A model generated the notes under the pieces. That model did no database searches and was not told where the DNA came from. It saw nothing but the letters and a program-made list of their open reading frames with translations. From assembly GCA_011109175.1 (NCBI GenBank), contig RDEW01000007.1, forward strand, positions 1,068,295 through 1,132,294: a stretch of DNA of 64,000 bases, read 5' to 3'. A program made the position numbers and the translations under genes. Below are positions 3,400 to 14,385 of the stretch, piece after piece. Position 1 is the first letter of the stretch. Every line of letters begins with the position of its first letter. This DNA is from Dicyema japonicum. Lineage: Eukaryota; Animalia; Dicyemida.

Positions 3400-4400
3400 A
3401 GTTAGAAAAGAGAACATAATTCCTATAATCATAAAATTTTTTGAATCATTAGAATTTGTATTTTTTCCAGGAGTTACTTTTTCAAAACACTCCGACTCTA
3501 AAATTCAGGAAAAATCAAACCTTTTCCAGTATAATGGGAATTAAACTCACTTTGAAGAATTTGTGCCTTAAATGATGAAAACTCAGCATATATGTCATCA
3601 GAAAATTTAGTGAGAGACAATTTGAAGTTACAGAATTTCCAACATCAATCAATTTGCTCTTATTAGGACTCCAAGACCCATTATAGATTTCATCGATGAC
3701 TATCTGAAAATTGGAGATATAATATTTGTTTTGAGACAAAATAAAAGTAAAAAGTATTTCAAAATGTCGCCTCTTAAGAGATAACTCAACACTATTGTCA
3801 TCAAAATTAATCTTCGTCTCCAGATTCGCGAAAACTAACAAATTATCAATCTAATATTAAAATATACAATTTACAATTTTAACAGTGTGATTATAAAAAA
3901 AGGTGATTCTAAAATGCCCACTTAATATTCCTTTCAGTCGATTTTCCGCAATAAAATACCAATATTGAACATTTGGATCGTTAGATGGATCACAGTCATG
4001 TGCTGAATTAAATTATGTCAAACCTTTTCCAATAAAAAATGGATTGATTGTTTAATGTAGTATTCTATCACCAAAGAATATAATGTGAGATATAACCATT
4101 CTCAAAACTTACGGACATATATCCGCATCTGTAATAATCTCCATGTTTAATATTTGGTAGATTTGTTGTATTTGTGTAGGTTTTATTATCTTTGAGTGTT
4201 AACTATTAAATACTAGAATTTAATTCTATTTTTATTGAGATGTTGTAAAATTTGTCTGAAAATTCAATAAAAAATTGGTAGATCAAATTATTTGTTTGAT
4301 TGTAATTGGCATTTTCATAATACAAGAAATAGTTTTAATTGAATAATGTTTGTCTACCATTATTATTCATAAATACATTTGTAAGTGTACTTTTCAATAA
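3400..4400 (-). CDS. putative orphan gene with micro-introns (Asn-rich, possibly secreted); may be degenerate
   Basis: 108-aa ORF 3515-3841 is preceded by a GT..AG micro-intron (gtaaattgtatattttaatattag) and further open stretches rich in NxS/T; no family recognised. Confidence 0.3.
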
Positions 4401-5329
4401 CTTTTAAAATATACTGACTTTGGATGTTTAAAGTCGAAATTCGTAATTGAAAACAAATACAGTAACAACAACATAATATGTATAATGAACACGTCGATGT
4501 GTATAATTTAGGTCACTTGTTATATTATTGAATTTATTTTTAATAATTAAAAAAATGATTTTTATATTAATTTTATAATTATACTTATTTTCGTGAATTC
4601 ATTAATCAAGAAAGTCCTCCATATTGCAATGTTAACGTCTTTAAGAATTTCATGGTATTTTATCGTAATCTACCAAAAGTCCTTCAGTTTTGGCGGAATC
4701 TTTAATGATCGAAAAAAATTTAATCAGCGATATTCGTAAATGATCAAAACAAATATTTAATGCACAATCGAATAAATATTTATTACCAAATGATTTAATA
4801 TATCTTTAAATTGTAAACGTATTTCCTTTAATCGTCAGGGAAAATGGGTTCTCAATTATGAGACTGGCCACTAGTAGTTAACTGCTTGTTTTTGTATTAA
4901 ACCGTTTTTATTAAAAAAAAGATTAATACTAGGAGAATATTCTGAAGTGAATTGAATATAAAAATTAATGCCAGTATTAACAAATAATACAGATATTCAT
5001 TAATAGGTGGCATAAAAGGAATTCATACACAGATCGTTAATTCATACACAAATTAATTAATTAATTTTTGCTTCTTTTATTGCTTAAAGTGGATAGGATA
5101 AGATAGTAAATTAATTTATTGGTGGACCCCTATTCTTTAAATGTCTAATTAATTACATACTATGTCTCCCGGTGGTATGAATATTTGGATTTGTTTTTTC
5201 TCAAATCATTGCGAAATTAGCCTAAAGGTCACGAACAATGAAGCCAATGACAATTCCATCTAAAATTGAATGTTGTCATAAACTCATTTTATTAAAATTA
5301 TACAATTTTATTTATTTAACAGCCCTTAC

Positions 5330-7299: not shown

Positions 7300-8145
7300 G
7301 TAGAATAATAATTTTTATATTTCCACACGTGCTGCACGTAAAGCGATTTTTCGGATCAATCTTGTCCATCCTCCCTGTTACTCGCCAAACTTCTCATAGC
7401 ATCCAGGTCCTCCCCAATATACAATTCGGATCGCGGAATTAGACAATGGTTACTGCTAAGGGAAAGAACGACACGAAAGCCACGCAGCAGCACTTCTCGT
7501 CCTCCGGAAGTGCTACGGCTGATTATTCACTTTGGATAACAAGACGCCGTACAAGGCAAAACCTGCTAAACCTGCAAATGATCTTACGAAACACACCCCA
7601 CGAAAGTGGCCAACCTACAGACGAACCAATGAAAGCAGATCCTATAGACACCGGACTCTATTGATCACAGTCGATTCTACTATGAGTGCGATAAAGATTG
7701 CAAACGTTCTACGATGCTATGACCAGTACGGATTATGAGGATGAACACGTTGACATTCTTCGGCTTCCCAAATGGTAGTCAGAAATCAGATGGCATGCTT
7801 CAATAGATCTGTCGTTTTTCTGTTAACACACTTTGTAAGCAATAGATGCCCGGTGGAGGCTATTTGGACATGTACTAAGAATGAACTCGGACGCACCCGC
7901 TAACAAATCGATGGAAAATTTCTTTGCGACAAACCTTCTCGCGGACGACTTAGATCGACAATTCCACCTGCCTTAAATAAAAATCTAAATCGTGTGAGAA
8001 AAAATCTAAAGACGGGGACGACCTGGACGAATTGAGATCACTAGCAGAGGAAGATGGAAGAGATTAACTATAAATATAGTTTCCATGAGTGTTGCACATG
8101 CAGAGCTATACAAATTATGGTTTTCGTGAAAGTGTCATAATAACA
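7300..8145 (+). mobile_element. RTE-like LINE 3' portion with 3'UTR
   Basis: RWRLFGHVLRMNSDAPAN...GDDLDELRSL, homologous to 61727-62002; the 3'UTR at 8098-8131 matches the SINE tail. Confidence 0.7.
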
Positions 8146-8326
8146 GTCATTTGATTATTAACAATTTATAAAACGAAAGTTCTAATAAGATTTAACAAAA
8201 ATCATGGTGGTAGATAACATATCGTTAAAATAAATCATCTGCAAATTGGTTAAAAATTTGATTTAACAAAATTAATTGAGTTATGAATAATAATAAGTTT
8301 ATTTTGACATCGCTGGCATTGTTTAG

Positions 8327-8557
8327 ATTGCTACGAGAAACCACCTTGCAAGGTTTGTGGTGACAGGTCATCGGGGGATCACTATGGAGTTGTAACTTGC
8401 GAAGGATGCAAAGTAACTTAATCATTATAAACTATAGGGGTTTTTCAGACGGTCTCAGATAGCCAATGCGACCTACAAGTGCTTTAAATATGAGACATGT
8501 GAGGTAGACAAAGAGAACAGAAATAAATGTCAACATTGTCGATACAAAAATGTTTGA
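8327..8557 (+). CDS. nuclear receptor NR1F (ROR/HR3-like) DNA-binding domain exons; partial gene
   Basis: Exon 8327-8412 [28 protein letters not shown], 25-nt intron 8413-8437, exon from 8438 [37 protein letters not shown]. Downstream long units supply LELGMSRS|AMKFGRMSK, the ROR/HR3 CTE signature (AVKFGRMSK). Confidence 0.9.
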
Positions 8558-11500
8558 GTAAGTATTACAATACTGGACACCTGCAGATGGCCTGTCGGGA
8601 GCTTCGATTATTTGATAAACGACGTTAGACTCTTCTGGGACCTAAGTAACTAAATCATTATAACTATAGAACTTTTACGGACGGTCTCAGATAGCCAATG
8701 CGACCTACAAGTGTTTCAAATATGGGACATGCATGGTCGACAAAGAGAACAGAAATTATTGTCAACATTGTCGATACAAAAATGTTTGGAATTGGGAATG
8801 TCCAGAAGTGGTATGTAAAATATATGATGATAATAACTTTTGACTTATCCATTATATTATCTGATAGCTATGAAATTTGGAGAATGTCTAAGAATACAAA
8901 AAACAGAGTTGGGGATTCAGGTTTACTATAACAAACGCATTATACATGATTTTAATGGATCTGCAAATCCATATTCCTCAGAGCGTCAAAAACGAAGTAA
9001 TTTGTAGTAATATTAATAGACGGTTTATCTCCCGAGTTATGACATAAAGTAAGAAAGCAGCCTGATAGTTACAATTACGGCAGTTTGTCAATGAGAAAGT
9101 CCATAGTAAGTATTACAATACTGGACACCTGCAGATGGCCTGTCGGGAGCTTCGATTATTTGATAAACGACGTTAGACTCTTTCTGGGACCTAAGTAACT
9201 AAATCATTATAACTATAGAACTTTTTACGGACGGTCTCAGATAGCCAATGCGACCTACAAGTGTTTAAAATATGAACATGCATGGTCGACAAAGAGAACA
9301 GAAATTATTGTTCAACATTGTCGATACAAAAATGTTTGAGTAAGTATTACAATACTGGACACCTGCAGATGGCCTGTCGGGAGCTTCGATTATTTGATAA
9401 ACGACGTTAGACTCTTCTGGGACCTAAGTAACTAAATCATTATAACTATAGAACTTTTACGGACGGTCTCAGATAGCCAATGCGACCTACAAGTGTTTCA
9501 AATATGGGAAATGCATGGTCGACAAAGATAACAGAAATTATTGTCAACATTGCCGATACAAAAATGTTTGAGTAAGTATTACAATACTGGACACCTGCAG
9601 ATGGCCTGTCGGGAGCTTCGATTATTTGATAAACGACGTTAGACTCTTCTGGGACCTAAGTAACTAAATCATTATAACTATAGAACTTTTACGGACGGTC
9701 TCAGATAGCCAATGCGACCTACAAGTGTTTCAAATATGAGACATGCATGGTCGACAAAGAGAACAGAAATTATTGTCAACATTGTCGATACAAAAATGTT
9801 TGAGTAAGTATTACAATACTGGACACCTGCAGATGGCCTGTCGGGAGCTTCGATTATTTGATAAACGACGTTAGACTCTTCTGGGACCTAAGTAACTAAA
9901 TCATTATAACTATAGAACTTTTACGGACGGTCTCAGATAGCCAATGCGACCTACAAGTGTTTCAAATATGGGAAATGCATGGTCGACAAAGATAACAGAA
10001 TTATTGTCAACATTGCCGATACAAAAATGTTTGAGTAAGTATTACAATACTGGACACCTGCAGATGGCCTGTCGGGAGCTTCGATTATTTGATAAACGAC
10101 GTTAGACTCTTCTGGGACCTAAGTAACTAAATCATTATAACTATAGAACTTTTACGGACGGTCTCAGATAGCCAATGCGACCTACAAGTGTTTCAAATAT
10201 GGGAAATGCATGGTCGACAAAGAGAACAGAAATTATTGTCAACATTGTCGATACAAAAATGTTTGAGTAAGATTACAATACCTGCAGATGGCCTGTCGGG
10301 AGCTTCGATTATTTGATAAACGACGTTAGACTCTTCTGGGACCTAAGTAACTAAATCATTATAACTATAGAACTTTTACGGACGGTCTCAGATAGCCAAT
10401 GCGACCTACAAGTGTTTCAAATATGGACATGCATGGTCGACAAAGAGAACAGAAATTATTGTCAACATTGTCGATACAAAAATGTTTGGAATTGGGAATG
10501 TCCAGAAGTGGTATGTAAAATATATTGATGATAATAACTTTTGACTTATCATTATTATTATCTGATAGCTATGAAATTTGGGAGAATGTCTAAGAATACA
10601 AAAACAGAGTTGGGGATCAGGTTTACTATAACAAACGCATTATACATGATTTTAATGATCTGCAAATCCATATTGCTCTGAACATCAAAAACGAAGTAAT
10701 TTGTACTAATATTAATAGACGGTTATCCCCGAGTTATGACATAAAGTAAGAAAGCAGCTGATAGTTACAATTACGACAGTTTGTCAATGAGAAAGTCCAT
10801 AGTAAGTATTACAATACTGGACACCTGCAGATGGCCTGTCGGGAGCTTCGATTATTTGATAAACGACGTTAGACTCTTCTGGGACCTAAGTAACTAAATC
10901 ATTATAACTATAGAACTTTTACGGACGGTCTCAGATAGCCAATGCGACCTACAAGTGTTTAAAATATGAGACATGCATGGTCGACAAAGAGAACAGAAAT
11001 TATTGTCAACATTGTCGATACAAAAATGTTTGGAATTGGGAATGTCCAGAAGTGGTATGTAAAATATATTGATGATAATAACTTTTGACTTATCATTATT
11101 ATTATCTGATAGCTATGAAATTTGGGAGAATGTCTAAGAATACAAAAACAGAGTTGGGGATCAGGTTTACTATAACAAACGCATTATACATGATTTTAAT
11201 GATCTGCAAATCCATATTGCTCTGAACATCAAAAACGAAGTAATTTGTACTAATATTAATAGACGGTTATCTCCCGAGTTATGACATAAAGTAAGAAAGC
11301 AGCTGATAGTTACAATTACGGCAGTTTGTCAATGAGAAAGTCCATAGTAAGTATTACAATACTGGACACCTGCAGATGGCCTGTCGGGAGCTTCGATTAT
11401 TTGATAAACGACGTTAGACTCTTCTGGGACCTAAGTAACTAAATCATTATAACTATAGAACTTTTACGGACGGTCTCAGATAGCCAATGCGACCTACAAG

Positions 11501-12441
11501 TGTTTCAAATATGGGACATGCATGGTCGACAAAGAGAACAGAAATTATTGTCAACATTGTCGATACAAAAATGTTTGAGTAAGTATTACAATACTGGACA
11601 CCTGCAGATGGCCTGTCGGGAGCTTCGATTATTTGATAAACGACGTTAGACTCTTCTGGGACCTAAGTAACTAAATCATTATAACTATAGAACTTTTACG
11701 GACGGTCTCAGATAGCCAATGCGACCTACAAGTGTTTCAAATATGAGACATGCATGGTCGACAAAGAGAACAGAAATTATTGTCAACATTGTCGATACAA
11801 AAATGTTTGAGTAAGTATTACAATACTGGACACCTGCAGATGGCCTGTCGGGAGCTTCGATTATTTGATAAACGACGTTAGACTCTTCTGGGACCTAAGT
11901 AACTAAATCATTATAACTATAGAACTTTTACGGACGGTCTCAGATAGCCAATGCGACCTACAAGTGTTTCAAATATGGGACATGCATGGTCGACAAAGAG
12001 AACAGAAATTATTGTCAACATTGTCGATACAAAAATGTTTGGAATTGGGAATGTCCAGAAGTGGTATGTAAAATATATTGATGATAATAACTTTTGACTT
12101 ATCATTATTATTATCTGATAGCTATGAAATTTGGGAGAATGTCTAAGAATACAAAAACAGAGTTGGGGATCAGGTTTACTATAACAAACGCATTATACAT
12201 GATTTTAATGATCTGCAAATCCATATTGCTCTGAACATCAAAAACGAAGTAATTTGTACTAATATTAATAGACGGTTATCTCCCGAGTTATGACATAAAG
12301 TAAGAAAGCAGCTGATAGTTACAATTACGGCAGTTTGTCAATGAGAAAGTCCATAGTAAGTATTACAATACTGGACACCTGCAGATGGCCTGTCGGGAGC
12401 TTCGATTATTTGATAAACGACGTTAGACTCTTCTGGGACCT
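8411..12441 (+). repeat. tandem array of nuclear-receptor ZF2 exon units (12 copies: 8 short of ~224-233 bp, 4 long of ~543-549 bp)
   Basis: Marker ctgggacct at about 8635, 9184, 9417, 9649, 9881, 10112, 10336, 10879, 11424, 11656, 11888 and 12433; long units also carry the CTE exon and part of the hinge. Confidence 0.95.
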
Positions 12442-12939
12442 CTACAGCTCAGACTTCAGACTTGCAGGAATGTGTTCTCAACACATGCAAAACAATGGAG
12501 GATGAACACATAGACTTGCAGGGAATGTGTTCTCAATTCTGGGAACCGACAGCTATGATGTTCTGCTGATTCATCATCCCCCATTGTTTTGCATGTGTTC
12601 TCAATTCAGTTATATGACGTTTCTGCTGTTCTTCTGATTCTTCATCCCGCATTTTTGTGCATATATCCTCGATTGCCTTTAACGATTTTTTACCCACGTA
12701 GGCTATTTCCCATTGTACACCATCTCCTAGATCCATGGGATCTTGTATTAGTGCCCAAAATGATTAAATGAAATTATCATTGAAATCACGCCATTTGACA
12801 GGATAATATTTTCAGAAACTCACTCACTTTTTCGGAAATGTTTTTATTTGTTCAAAAGTATTTTTTAAATTAAAATCCGTCCATTTATCCGCGAGTTATA
12901 GTGTCATTAACATACAACATTGAGTTTTAATAAATATAT

Positions 12940-13550
12940 AGATTAGTCTCCCCAAATAACCATTGACAAATCCTCCATATCATTCAAAATATACTCCACT
13001 TCTGTTTGACCTCATCAACGGACTTTATTACCCCCCCCAAACTGCTAATCAAAGAGAATAGAATTCCCACTAGCACGAATACACATATACTACAAATCAT
13101 CACAAATTTATTTAATTCCAATTTTATCGACGGAAATTGCTTGTATATTTCATTAATGGGAGTATTGTGATTGAGAGTATTCGACAATAACAAGTTGACA
13201 CGTGTATTTGGTTAGACAGTCTTGTAGTTTGTCATAATAATTTGTCAGCATTTCTGCGAGGTTTTCATTCATAGGTAGACAGACCGCCATTGATGGAATG
13301 TCAGTGGAGGGAGTATGCTCACATGATATGACATCAGAAAGGTAATGAGACTGCTGTTGGTAAACGAGGAAATAATAATTTTGACTTTACAAACACAGAC
13401 ATTAGTCTGTCAGCATAGTTGAATTCAACAAACACTCTCAGTGAGTCTTCCGCCTAAAATTCAATAAATGTCATGAATATTCCTTACCGAAACAGACTAA
13501 AACTTTTGATCTTCCACCAATAATCCTTAGTGAGCAAGTTTCCACACCCA
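12940..13550 (-). CDS. putative orphan gene with micro-introns and C-terminal hydrophobic segment
   Basis: GT..AG segments of ~34-37 nt separate open frames; ICVFVLVGILFSLISSL is TM-like; the frame is not fully resolved. Confidence 0.3.
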
Positions 13551-13689
13551 CAAACCGTTTTATTTTAAATTATTTTTTTAATTTAAGGTTATTATTTATT
13601 TTAAAAATATTTTTATTTGAATGGTGATGCGTGTCAAAAAAATGCGTATAAATGACAAATGTTTTCTAAAAGTTCACGACTATAAATAC

Positions 13690-13880
13690 AGTCAACCCTC
13701 TCTATAGTGACAAAATGTCCACGTAAAAACACGATGTTAACTAATTTTCAATAGTGAACAAAAAATAGAACAAAAATAAAACAAAAAATAAAAATAACAA
13801 TCAACAATAATAAAGTAATTACAAAGATCAATTAGATGCTTTTTTCAGATAATCGGATATTTTTTGTGAATGATTAGCAT
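13690..13880 (-). mobile_element. pogo/Tigger terminal remnant
   Basis: TA+CAGTCAACCCTCTCTATAGTGAC is TIR-like; minus strand QKISDYL resembles the Tigger C-terminal QxxITDFF. Confidence 0.45.
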
Positions 13881-13887
13881 GATTATT

Positions 13888-14385
13888 TTTTTGGTTAGGG
13901 TTACTGTTTAAGGTCTTCAATTAGGGTTATTGTTTAGTGCATTTGGTAATGGCTAAATTTTAGTGTCTGTGCTTAGGGTTTTTGTTTAGAGTTACTGTTA
14001 AAAGTCTTCAATTAAGGTTAGTGTTTAGTGTTTTGGCTAGGGTTATTGTTTAAGGTCTTTAAATATGGTTAGTGTTTAGTGTTTTTGTATAGGGTTACAG
14101 TTTAGTGTCTGTGCTCAGGGTTTTTGGTTAGGGTTACTGTTTAAAATTTTCAATAGTGTTTAGTGCTTTTAGATAGGGTTACAGTTTAGTGTCTGTGCTT
14201 AGGGTTTTTGGTTAGTGTTACTGTTTAAGATTTTCATTAGGGTTAGTGTTTAGTGCTTTTTGTTAGGGCTACAGTTTAGTGTCTGTGAAAGGGTTTTTGA
14301 TTAGGGTTACTGTTTAAGGTTTTTCATTAGGGTTAGTGTTTATTGAATTTGGATAAAGTTACTGCTTAGGCTCAGTGCTTATGGG
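13888..14385 (+). repeat. TTAGGG-rich minisatellite, ~85-90 bp unit
   Basis: Repeating ggttagggttactgtttaagg...ttagggttagtgtttagtg...tttagtgtctgtgcttagggttttt. Confidence 0.9.

Follow-up and report, generated by a model that had tools for sequence, protein, structure and literature searches.

Layout of the receptor-derived array

The window, i.e. the whole stretch of 64,000 nucleotides of Dicyema japonicum DNA that was analyzed, contains a single exon for the first zinc finger (ZF1) of a nuclear receptor, followed at 8411-12441 by 12 head-to-tail units, each with an exon for the second finger (ZF2). Coordinates are window positions and are listed in Table 1. Exactly 12 ZF2 cores, spanning 8438-12040, were found by anchor searches and Tandem Repeats Finder (period of 232 bp, matches of 97-99%, scores of 2594 and 1385), which bore out the count of one ZF1 exon and 12 ZF2 copies, 4 long and 8 short, given in the initial annotation of this DNA. 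The long units (copies 2, 8, 9, and 12) measure 543-549 bp, the short ones 224-233 bp. By genome search the array was found at one locus only.

Table 1. Features of the nuclear receptor (NR)-derived locus and its flanks (window coordinates).
Feature	Position	Strand	Evidence
Very high-copy dispersed repeat, directly upstream, outside the NR-derived segment	7945..8079	+	contig depth
First-intron remnant of the parent gene; paralogue homology starts downstream of ATG and donor	8286..8326	+	alignment with C334, C257, C168
ZF1 exon, first zinc finger, CEGCK P-box	8327..8412	+	translation; Pfam zf-C4
Unit 1, short, 233 bp; intron 8413-8437, ZF2 exon from 8438	8411..8643	+	
Unit 2, long, 549 bp; ZF2 from 8670, donor 8812, exon of the C-terminal extension (CTE) from 8868	8644..9192	+	
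Units 3-7, short, 224-233 bp	9193..10344	+	
Units 8 and 9, long, 543 and 545 bp	10345..11432	+	
Units 10 and 11, short, 232 bp each	11433..11896	+	
Unit 12, long, 545 bp	11897..12441	+	
Short interspersed repeat	12361..12481	.	>30 dispersed genome matches; alignments to 12
Downstream flank common to the paralogous loci, 86-94% identity	12442..13630	.	

Introns 1 and 2 are retained within the units. The acceptor ACTATAG is kept in 12/12 units, with one other ACTATAG in the entire 64 kb, and the sequence offers a candidate GT donor 3' of every ZF2 copy. The long units read ...AGTG/GTATGT, followed by the CTE exon, while in the eight short units the deletion junction gives TTGA/GTAAGT; copy 7, near 10266, has GTAAGA instead and a 7-nt deletion, which sits in its tail. 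These splice signals had all been described before and were recovered in the sequence. The CTE exon is internal to the repeat unit and not a common downstream exon. In unit 2 it is followed by the deletion junction, at which the ligand-binding domain (LBD) was lost, and then by the tail. The tail of each unit consists of the first ~80 bp of the short interspersed repeat, inside which the tandem-duplication breakpoint at 12441 is located. This position is the 3' end of the array, and the sequence beyond it is collinear with a single-unit paralogue on contig C257.

The upstream repeat reached a summed contig depth of 590,041 in run X1, compared to 449 in the unique flank. From an ORF2-tail-like reading at 7840-7975 it may resemble the 3' end of a LINE; a Pfam search of the neighboring ORFs yielded no family. 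BLAST homology to the paralogues was found from 8281, with the alignment placing its start at ~8286. The junction upstream of ZF1 is real, since an X1 contig spans 8048-8327 at single-copy depth. An origin of the copies through 3' transduction, or through the flanking repeat capturing them, was considered; no poly-A/T or target-site signature was seen at 8286. On the downstream side, the identity of the flank to the paralogues exceeds that of the NR part (80-88%). This flank contains internal 68-nt direct repeats and 26-nt inverted repeats; its reverse-strand ORFs gave no Pfam family, and Rfam gave no match over 7500-14000.

Reading frame and contig support

All 12 ZF2 units carry a run of five adenines (A5) in the CRYKKC codons, in agreement with the initial annotation, and in all 12 copies the outcome is a stop (CRYKNV, then stop) or a shifted frame. 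The previous statement that the copies stop at CRYKNV holds for most of them, but in copies 3, 6, and 8 further 1-nt indels break the frame before this point is reached. In the A5 frame the TGA stop lies within the exon, immediately 5' of the putative short-unit donor, and therefore splicing at this donor would not remove it. The CTE exon of the window is followed by stops, and the extension motif is split by the A5 frameshift. All eight zinc-binding cysteines are retained in 9/12 ZF2 copies and in ZF1. Pfam zf-C4 was matched by ZF2 pieces with E-values of 6e-11 and 4e-9, and at ZF1 (C345:1076638-1076712) over positions 2-26. ZF1 has no in-frame ATG and a stop 9 codons upstream of its first cysteine; the only ATG close by, at 8283, does not connect in frame across a candidate 30-nt intron. 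The reading CEGCKGFFRRS, from which, together with AVKFGRMSK, the family had initially been recognized, stood for copy 1 only, as copies 2-12 have NFYGR in place of GFFRR. Even in copy 1 the glycine codon GGG found no contig support: contigs of the assembly's own sample run from ZF1 into ...CTATAG AAC TTT TTC AGA C, i.e. they read asparagine as in the presumptive parent gene on contig C334 described below.

Contig cover was examined over 7900-9230 using read-derived contigs, not raw reads. All three runs from the assembly's sample yielded contigs with A5, error-free ones in X2 and X3, and X5, from a second sample, showed A5 across the short-unit junction. X5 additionally contained two contigs with six adenines (A6), as deep as its A5 contig. 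The longer one shows one further difference, as expected from a linked T>A change of C257, and the other covers a region where C257 and the array differ at the A run only; by sequence, both A6 contigs appear to match the single-unit pseudogene on C257, which is the only A6 locus in the assembly. The repeat-to-array depth ratio of X5 is unlike that of the other runs. Summed contig depth relative to the unique flank, which is not a copy number, was ~8-13x for the core and 2-5x for the long-unit part and agrees roughly with 12 core and 4 long copies. Both junction types and the unit-to-unit junction were present in Illumina-derived contigs of three runs. The bins at 8440-8484 showed zero contig cover at >=95% likeness and those at 8485-8529 cover far below single-copy depth. 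Contig holes extend over 8440-8529 in all three runs; a further hole was seen at 8890-8979 in X1 and X2. The contig sequences differ from the window at 8431-8440 and at five positions in the flank, and an X1 contig over 8718-8788 has three differences fitting the variant that units 4 and 6 represent.

Paralogues, receptor family and divergence

The paralogue on C334 is the fuller one. A presumptive ATG is present, the two fingers are in frame (CRLKKC, A7), and zf-C4 is matched over positions 2-70 with 91 bits; the gene reads GMSRR-A-MKFGRMSK across a GT-AG intron, staying in frame through the DNA-binding domain (DBD) and the CTE. Its tail and downstream flank are the same as those of the window. 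Its exon QKVLAFVHQIPGFEGINREDQNILIEE matched nuclear-receptor LBDs only (PDB), with weak matches. Since an LBD search with Pfam on the separate exons of C334 yielded none and PF00104, run over the genome, gave no match at C334, the LBD of this gene is represented by one signature exon. The evidence for C334 comes from separate exons, and protein-level searches of the parent and of ZF1/ZF2 were run exon by exon. The gene looks intact and is probably the parent of the window copy or shares an ancestor with it. Compared to this parent, the window copy is short of ~1 kb of hinge and LBD: parent positions 3663-4688 have no counterpart in the window, and PF00104 had no match there. The window also lacks the ATG(T/C)/GTCAAT and the upstream blocks that C334, C257, and C168 have in common.

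The ZF2 exon of C334 had its best PDB match in the ROR-gamma DBD (54.4 bits, E-value of 3e-14), with NR2C2 close behind at 52 bits. The most identical library matches to the ZF2 query carry AVKFGRMSKKQR. The C-terminal extension GMSRxA(V)KFGRMSK is what we take to be the defining motif of NR1F. FGRMSK occurs in an HR3 context in one paper. With the ROR-gamma-like ZF2 of the parent, AMKFGRMSK, and the AVKFGRMSKKQR relatives, the original assignment to NR1F (ROR/HR3) is reasonably supported as far as the family is concerned, but the copy in the window is without an LBD. Decayed copies were also found on C257, C319, and C168, each of which lost the LBD or more through different deletions. The top library match, P0001, has 8 matched stretches and the look of a translated relative of the array, but it is a metagenomic ORF of no relation in which a CxHCRY motif recurs. 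As it had no match in the D. japonicum genome and occurs on a single ENA contig, it was rejected as a chance match. For the 45-aa open frame of unit 12, no homologous protein was found among candidates of 25-79 aa.

The units are 97-100% alike. Among copies 2-12 there are 6 substitution sites in total, with 0-5 substitutions per pair in 232 bp, and unit-specific differences are mainly 1-nt homopolymer indels. Units 2, 8, 10, and 12 are identical in their substitutions, as are units 5 and 11 and units 4 and 6. Units 9 and 12 have identical long-specific parts; the one of unit 2 differs by ~5% from those of units 8, 9, and 12 and kept parent-like states. The mosaic unit 1 departs from the array consensus at 16 places within its first 118 columns and, after a sharp switch, at none past ~8529. 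Such older units at the edge (mosaic copy 1, parent-like copy 2) fit unequal crossing-over. Compared to the parent, dN/dS was 0.89-0.98 for ZF2 and 0.24 for ZF1; given the latter value, the window copy may have passed through a functional phase. In units 2-12, the substitution sites are exonic in 6/6 cases (binomial p ~0.02), and 4 of them fall into the D-box, resulting in four variants (FKYGT, FKYGK, FKYET, and LKYET), all frameshifted. This exon clustering departs from uniform neutral decay; two of the states are ancestral and common to the paralogues.

Origin of the array and comparison with known systems

According to one of the two readings in the initial annotation, ZF1 would be joined to one of 12 mutually exclusive ZF2 exons and then to a CTE exon, as in a Dscam-like cassette diversifying the DBD; the receptor isoforms would then have different D-boxes. 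The acceptors conserved in 12/12 copies, the GT donor behind each copy, and the D-box clustering of substitutions speak for such a cassette. Nevertheless, the alternative-exon reading fails because A5, which puts a stop within every exon, was confirmed in contigs and an intact-looking paralogue exists on C334, a combination that the initial annotation had named as refuting it. Moreover, start codon, first donor, and LBD are all missing, the CTE exon belongs to the repeat unit with stops behind it, the near-identical variants are not diversified, and three copies carry extra frameshifts. No inverted repeat of >=12 nt was found between the ZF1 intron and the units, hence no docking/selector pairing is formed, although such pairing is not used by all mutually exclusive exon clusters. 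The introns of D. japonicum have a mean length of 38 bp and a median of <30 bp (PMC6736024; PMC13644364), and given such ultra-short introns the skipping of 0.2-3.5 kb would be exceptional. We consider this reading extremely improbable. A newborn alternative-exon cluster, with A6 and a start from an upstream exon in some haplotypes or individuals, is very improbable as well; the exonic clustering of the substitutions and the unexplained depth of A6 in X5 are the only two hints of it. If it existed, it would provide LBD-less isoforms with the four D-boxes named above and thus different dimerisation surfaces.

Some function without a full receptor could also be imagined for a transcribed array, either via two-finger peptides ending in CRYKNV, which would interfere with the parent, or as a non-coding or small-RNA source. 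The cysteine ligands kept in most copies, the ZF1 dN/dS of 0.24, and an X5 depth profile unlike plain genomic DNA, in a run whose contigs cover both the tail and the short junction, are in line with this. However, ZF1 is not preceded by an in-frame ATG, the one at 8283 being out of frame, the DNA-contacting FFRR is replaced by NFYGR, the truncation leaves little of the third DBD helix, ZF2 evolved with a dN/dS of ~1, and the X5 contig, which may or may not derive from RNA, runs unspliced through the putative donor. Partial function is regarded as very unlikely. An assembly artefact, with unit number and order inflated or scrambled and the single-copy frameshifts being PacBio indel errors, is very unlikely as well. 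In its favor, the assembly was merged from Falcon (PacBio RS II) and Platanus (Illumina) contigs (PMC6736024), the units differ mainly by 1-nt homopolymer indels, and there are the contig-window disagreements and holes mentioned above. Against it stand the Illumina-derived contigs, in which three runs show both junctions and the unit-unit junction, the presence of the short junction in the second sample, a summed depth near the assembled 12 and 4 copies, and the X1 contig of the type of units 4 and 6. An artefact of this kind would alter details only, not the nature of the locus.

We conclude with a probability of about 0.85 that the locus is a non-functional, unprocessed pseudogene fragment of an NR1F-like (ROR/HR3-like) receptor, which was duplicated and then tandemly amplified. 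Structure, paralogues, missing parts, frameshifts, and the near-identity of the units were directly observed; the order of events and the lack of function are what we infer from them. Introns are retained, frameshifts and truncations are present, and the C334 paralogue is in frame through DBD and CTE, as is typical for an unprocessed pseudogene. The fallback explanation of the initial annotation, a satellite born from a gene, matches the evidence. A segment with the receptor gene and its 3' flank would have been copied from the C334 gene or from a common ancestor with it. The 5' end with its ATG and its first donor would then have been lost from the copy, together with ~1 kb that comprised hinge and LBD, and the A5 frameshift in the CRYKKC codons gained. 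A tandem duplication with breakpoints at the last ZF1 bases (8411) and inside the short interspersed repeat (12441) would have created a unit of ~545 bp consisting of intron 1, ZF2, intron 2, CTE exon, and tail, and the deletion of 313 bp from one unit the short form of 232 bp. Unequal crossing-over and gene conversion probably multiplied and homogenised both forms, leaving the older, parent-like units at the edge.

Of little importance in itself, the result disposes of a tempting but mistaken candidate for a transcription factor diversified through an exon array. In addition, it indicates that in a very compact, repeat-rich parasite genome one ROR/HR3-like gene gave rise to at least four partial and decayed copies, of which one was amplified 12-fold. 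Domain scans would inflate the nuclear-receptor count here, as the units listed match Pfam zf-C4 above the cut-off. Finally, with its deletion variant, its edge units, and a conversion breakpoint, the locus can serve as a small, datable case of how tandem arrays change over time.

Drosophila Dscam1-type clusters share with the array the tandem homologous exons with their own acceptors and the single upstream exon. In contrast to Dscam1, all copies of the window are frameshifted and nearly identical, a constitutive downstream exon, a start codon, and docking/selector complementarity are absent, and the host genome has ultra-short introns. Compared to NR1F receptors (vertebrate ROR alpha/beta/gamma, insect HR3), the parent is alike in the CEGCK P-box, the ROR-gamma-like ZF2, the ...GMSR-x-A-(V/M)-KFGRMSK extension, and the LBD signature exon, but it is very divergent and has N for the usual G after CEGCK, whereas the window copy lacks LBD and start, has NFYGR for FFRR, and is frameshifted. 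The 2DBD receptors of flatworms and molluscs also duplicated a nuclear-receptor DNA-binding module within one locus, and three matches of the ZF2 library query were proteins with two DBDs. However, 2DBD receptors have two complete two-finger DBDs and an LBD in one open frame, while the window repeats the second finger only and has no through frame. Amplified unprocessed pseudogene fragments and gene-derived satellites resemble the array in their head-to-tail units keeping the introns and exons of the source, the disabling mutation common to all units, the near-identical interior with older, diverged edge units, and the deletion variant co-amplified with the full unit. Unlike a large satellite, however, the array comprises a mere 12 units in 4.1 kb and is confined to a single locus, and it derives from the DNA-binding exon of a transcription factor.

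Structure of the tandem array

Using a tandem-repeat scan and an anchor-motif scan of the window, 12 head-to-tail units were found behind the single first zinc-finger exon (ZF1), and the initial annotation of a 12-copy array of second zinc-finger exons (ZF2) was accurate in this respect. By sequence reading, a 25-nt GT-AG intron directly follows ZF1. Intron 1 is copied in every long unit, along with the ZF2 exon and its native donor (...AGTG^GTATGT), a 60-nt intron, the exon of the C-terminal extension (CTE; A-MKFGRMSK...) and a tail, while short units lack 313-317 bp of this sequence between ...TGTTTG and AGTAAGT.... The ZF2 pieces matched Pfam zf-C4. As initially described, ACTATAG precedes the ZF2 exon in 12/12 units, and a run of five A at the CRYKKC codons (A5), within CGATACAAAAATG, was likewise found in 12/12. 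Under A5 a TGA stop falls within the exon, immediately 5' of the putative short-unit donor. A stop after CRYKNV, originally assigned to all copies, holds for most of them, but additional 1-nt indels break the frame further upstream in copies 3, 6 and 8. The proposed CEGCK-GFFRRS motif is also restricted, with GFFRR in copy 1 only and NFYGR in copies 2-12.

Features of the array, its paralogues and the adjoining repeat (C334, C257, C319 and C168 are other contigs of the assembly)
Feature	Location	Strand	Description
ZF1 exon	8327-8412		one copy; translation gives a 28-residue first finger
Array	8411-12441		12 units
Long units (2, 8, 9, 12)			543-549 bp each
Short units (remaining 8)			224-233 bp each
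Short interspersed repeat	12361-12945; further copies at loci L037-L046		>30 genomic copies
C334 nuclear receptor gene	C334:1,720,000-1,729,000	minus	apparently intact, ROR/HR3-like
C257 copy	C257:486,914-487,641		single unit, decayed; six A (A6) kept, donor destroyed, second finger shortened
C319 copy	C319:294,187-294,337		single unit, decayed
C168 copy	C168:287,391-287,519		single unit, decayed; ZF1 and start of ZF2 only

The left breakpoint of the tandem duplication (8411) falls on the final bases of the ZF1 exon and the right one (12441) inside the short interspersed repeat, to which the last ~80 bp of every unit belong; beyond 12441 the window is collinear with C257. This repeat contains a 68-nt direct repeat (12525-12660) and a 26-nt inverted repeat (12480-12505 / 12574-12599) and borders the 3' side of the receptor copies on C334, C257, C319 and in the window. 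No Pfam family and no Rfam match was found for the downstream flank. Just past the shared flank, 13889-14342 is occupied by another block of tandem repeats (GGTTAGTGTTTAGTG-like), in which periods of 26, 39, 84 and 142 nt are nested. Directly 5' of the receptor fragment lies an extreme-copy repeat (7945-8079), with a summed contig depth of up to ~1,300x the unique flank in X1, a run from the assembly's sample. Translated, 7840-7975 looks like the C-terminal end of a LINE ORF2; Pfam searches of the ORFs adjoining the extreme-copy repeat gave no match.

Paralogues and missing gene parts

The assembly (67,542,437 bases, 377 contigs), in which the window occupies C345:1,068,295-1,132,294, was searched with one long unit as DNA query and with the zf-C4 profile. 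The array was confined to the window locus, and related single loci were found on C334, C257, C319 and C168. The C334 gene has a presumptive start (ATG T^GTCAAT...) forming a one-codon first coding exon, a ~61-nt intron, the ZF1 exon followed by a 24-nt intron, an in-frame ZF2 exon of 47 residues with seven A (A7), a GT-AG intron, the CTE exon AMKFGRMSKETKDR... and, further downstream, the exon QKVLAFVHQIPGFEGINREDQNILIEE; its micro-introns measure 24-85 nt. N is found where G is usual after CEGCK. The best solved relative of its ZF2 exon was the DNA-binding domain of ROR-gamma (E 3.3e-14), with NR2C2 a close second, and exon QKVLAFVHQIPGFEGINREDQNILIEE matched nuclear-receptor ligand-binding domains (LBDs) only, namely those of VDR, LXR and Rev-erb (E about 0.04). 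Based on its in-frame exons, the LBD-type exon, and a tail and downstream flank common to it and the window, the C334 locus, its exons being compared singly, is apparently a fuller and functional relative of the window copy and is termed the parent below.

Alignment 5' of ZF1 revealed a start and donor, ATG(T/C)^GTCAAT, and conserved blocks further upstream common to C334, C257 and C168. Homology of the window to these paralogues starts only at ~8286, inside the first intron; a single-copy contig crosses this junction, which is therefore real. The sole ATG in the vicinity, at 8283, lies out of frame once the candidate 30-nt intron is removed. For parent positions 3663-4688, comprising the hinge end and the LBD, no matching sequence was found in any part of the 64-kb window, where the PF00104 profile also gave no score. 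The LBD is also gone from C257 and C319, via different deletions. The window, C257, C319 and C168 loci are a family of decaying partial copies. Further partial paralogues were observed at C276:1800-3096 (another contig of the assembly) and C334:43,100-44,400, with 81-87% identity to the C334 gene in the LBD region and 94% in tail and flank, and no zf-C4 match nearby.

Assembly soundness and the A5 run

The published assembly (67.5 Mb, 377 scaffolds, 49% repeats, heterozygosity 1.24%, mean intron 38 bp) was merged from Platanus Illumina and Falcon PacBio RS II data (PMC6736024). The unit-to-unit, long and short junctions were all present in contigs of sequencing runs. Summed contig depth relative to the unique flank, a figure which is not a copy number, was about 8-13x for the core and about 2-5x for the long-specific part, near the assembled 12 and 4. 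Five flank sites differ between contigs and window, which fits the reported heterozygosity. At a likeness of >=95%, 8440-8484 had zero contig cover in runs X1-X3, all from the assembly's sample; cover was far below single-copy depth at 8485-8529, and 8890-8979 was nearly or wholly uncovered in X1 and X2, with one contig in X3. Contigs and window also disagree at 8431-8440. Contigs running out of ZF1 read CTATAG AAC TTT TTC AGA C, a word not found in the assembly, where the window has ACTATAG GGG TTT TTC. The Gly of GFFRR is thus without contig support, and Asn is found instead, as in the parent. A minor haplotype, or PacBio errors in the two oldest units, may account for these mismatches and gaps (8431-8530 and 8890-8980).

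For the A run, contigs, not raw reads, of X1-X3 and of X5, a run from a second sample, were aligned to window positions 7900-9230. Error-free contigs of X2 and X3 carried the ZF2 end with A5, and an X5 contig with A5 crosses the short-unit junction. Three contigs carry an extra A, two from X5 and one from X2, the latter with a depth of 78 of 421. Within the assembly, A6 occurs at C257 alone. The longer X5 A6 contig (8748-8795) has a single additional difference, as many as the linked T>A of C257 at 8757 predicts, and the shorter one (8767-8802) covers a span where only the A run separates C257 from the array. As A5 was found in contigs of X2, X3 and X5 and the A6 contigs match C257, A5 is real for the array. 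In X5 the C257-type A6 contigs equalled the A5 array contig in depth, and the depth ratio of high-copy repeat to array was ~4:1 versus 80-100:1 in X1-X3, a profile unlike genomic DNA. The X5 library may be RNA; in that case its contig would represent a transcript that runs through the putative short-unit donor without splicing.

Origin of the array

Units 2-12 differ by 0-5 substitutions in a 232-bp core, with units 2/8/10/12, 5/11 and 4/6 forming substitution-identical sets. In the long-specific part, units 9 and 12 agree in 316/316 bases, and unit 2, with about 5% divergence, retains states like those of the parent. A mosaic is seen in unit 1, with 16 differences to the consensus in columns 9-118 and 0 in columns 119-235, which places a breakpoint, from crossover or conversion, near 8529. 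A homogenised interior with older edge units is the classical signature of unequal crossing-over. Compared to the parent, dN/dS was 0.89-0.98 for ZF2, 0.24 for ZF1 and 0.41-0.47 for both together, as would be expected if the parent branch was under constraint and the other branch neutral, perhaps following a period of function. Identity between loci was 80-88% in the receptor part versus 86-94% in the shared flank.

All six substitution sites among units 2-12 fall into the exon (binomial p about 0.02), and four of the six fall in a 12-bp stretch of the D-box, between Cys 1 and Cys 2 of ZF2, a concentration which might be read as selection. However, GAG and TTTAAA, two of the states, are ancestral and recur in unit 1, the parent or C319; the other events are few, and the frameshift accompanies every variant. 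The clustering, the one feature incompletely accounted for, is taken as retained older variation plus short conversion tracts. The initial annotation had put forward a candidate Dscam-like arrangement, in which ZF1 is spliced to alternative ZF2 exons to diversify the receptor. The A5 frameshift runs against it, no inverted repeats of at least 12 nt usable as a docking/selector pair were found, and the supposedly downstream CTE exon is part of the repeat unit itself, with stop codons after it. The required skipping of 0.2-3.5 kb would be extraordinary where introns are mostly <40 bp; introns <30 bp are typical of D. japonicum (PMC13644364). Protein searches found no product of the array. With A5 confirmed and an apparently intact ROR-like gene on C334, the alternative-exon reading is not supported. 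The annotation's second option, a gene-born satellite, is supported. We consider the locus very probably (roughly 85%) a 5'- and 3'-truncated, frameshifted, unprocessed ROR/HR3-like pseudogene fragment, which unequal crossing-over would have amplified into tandem units.
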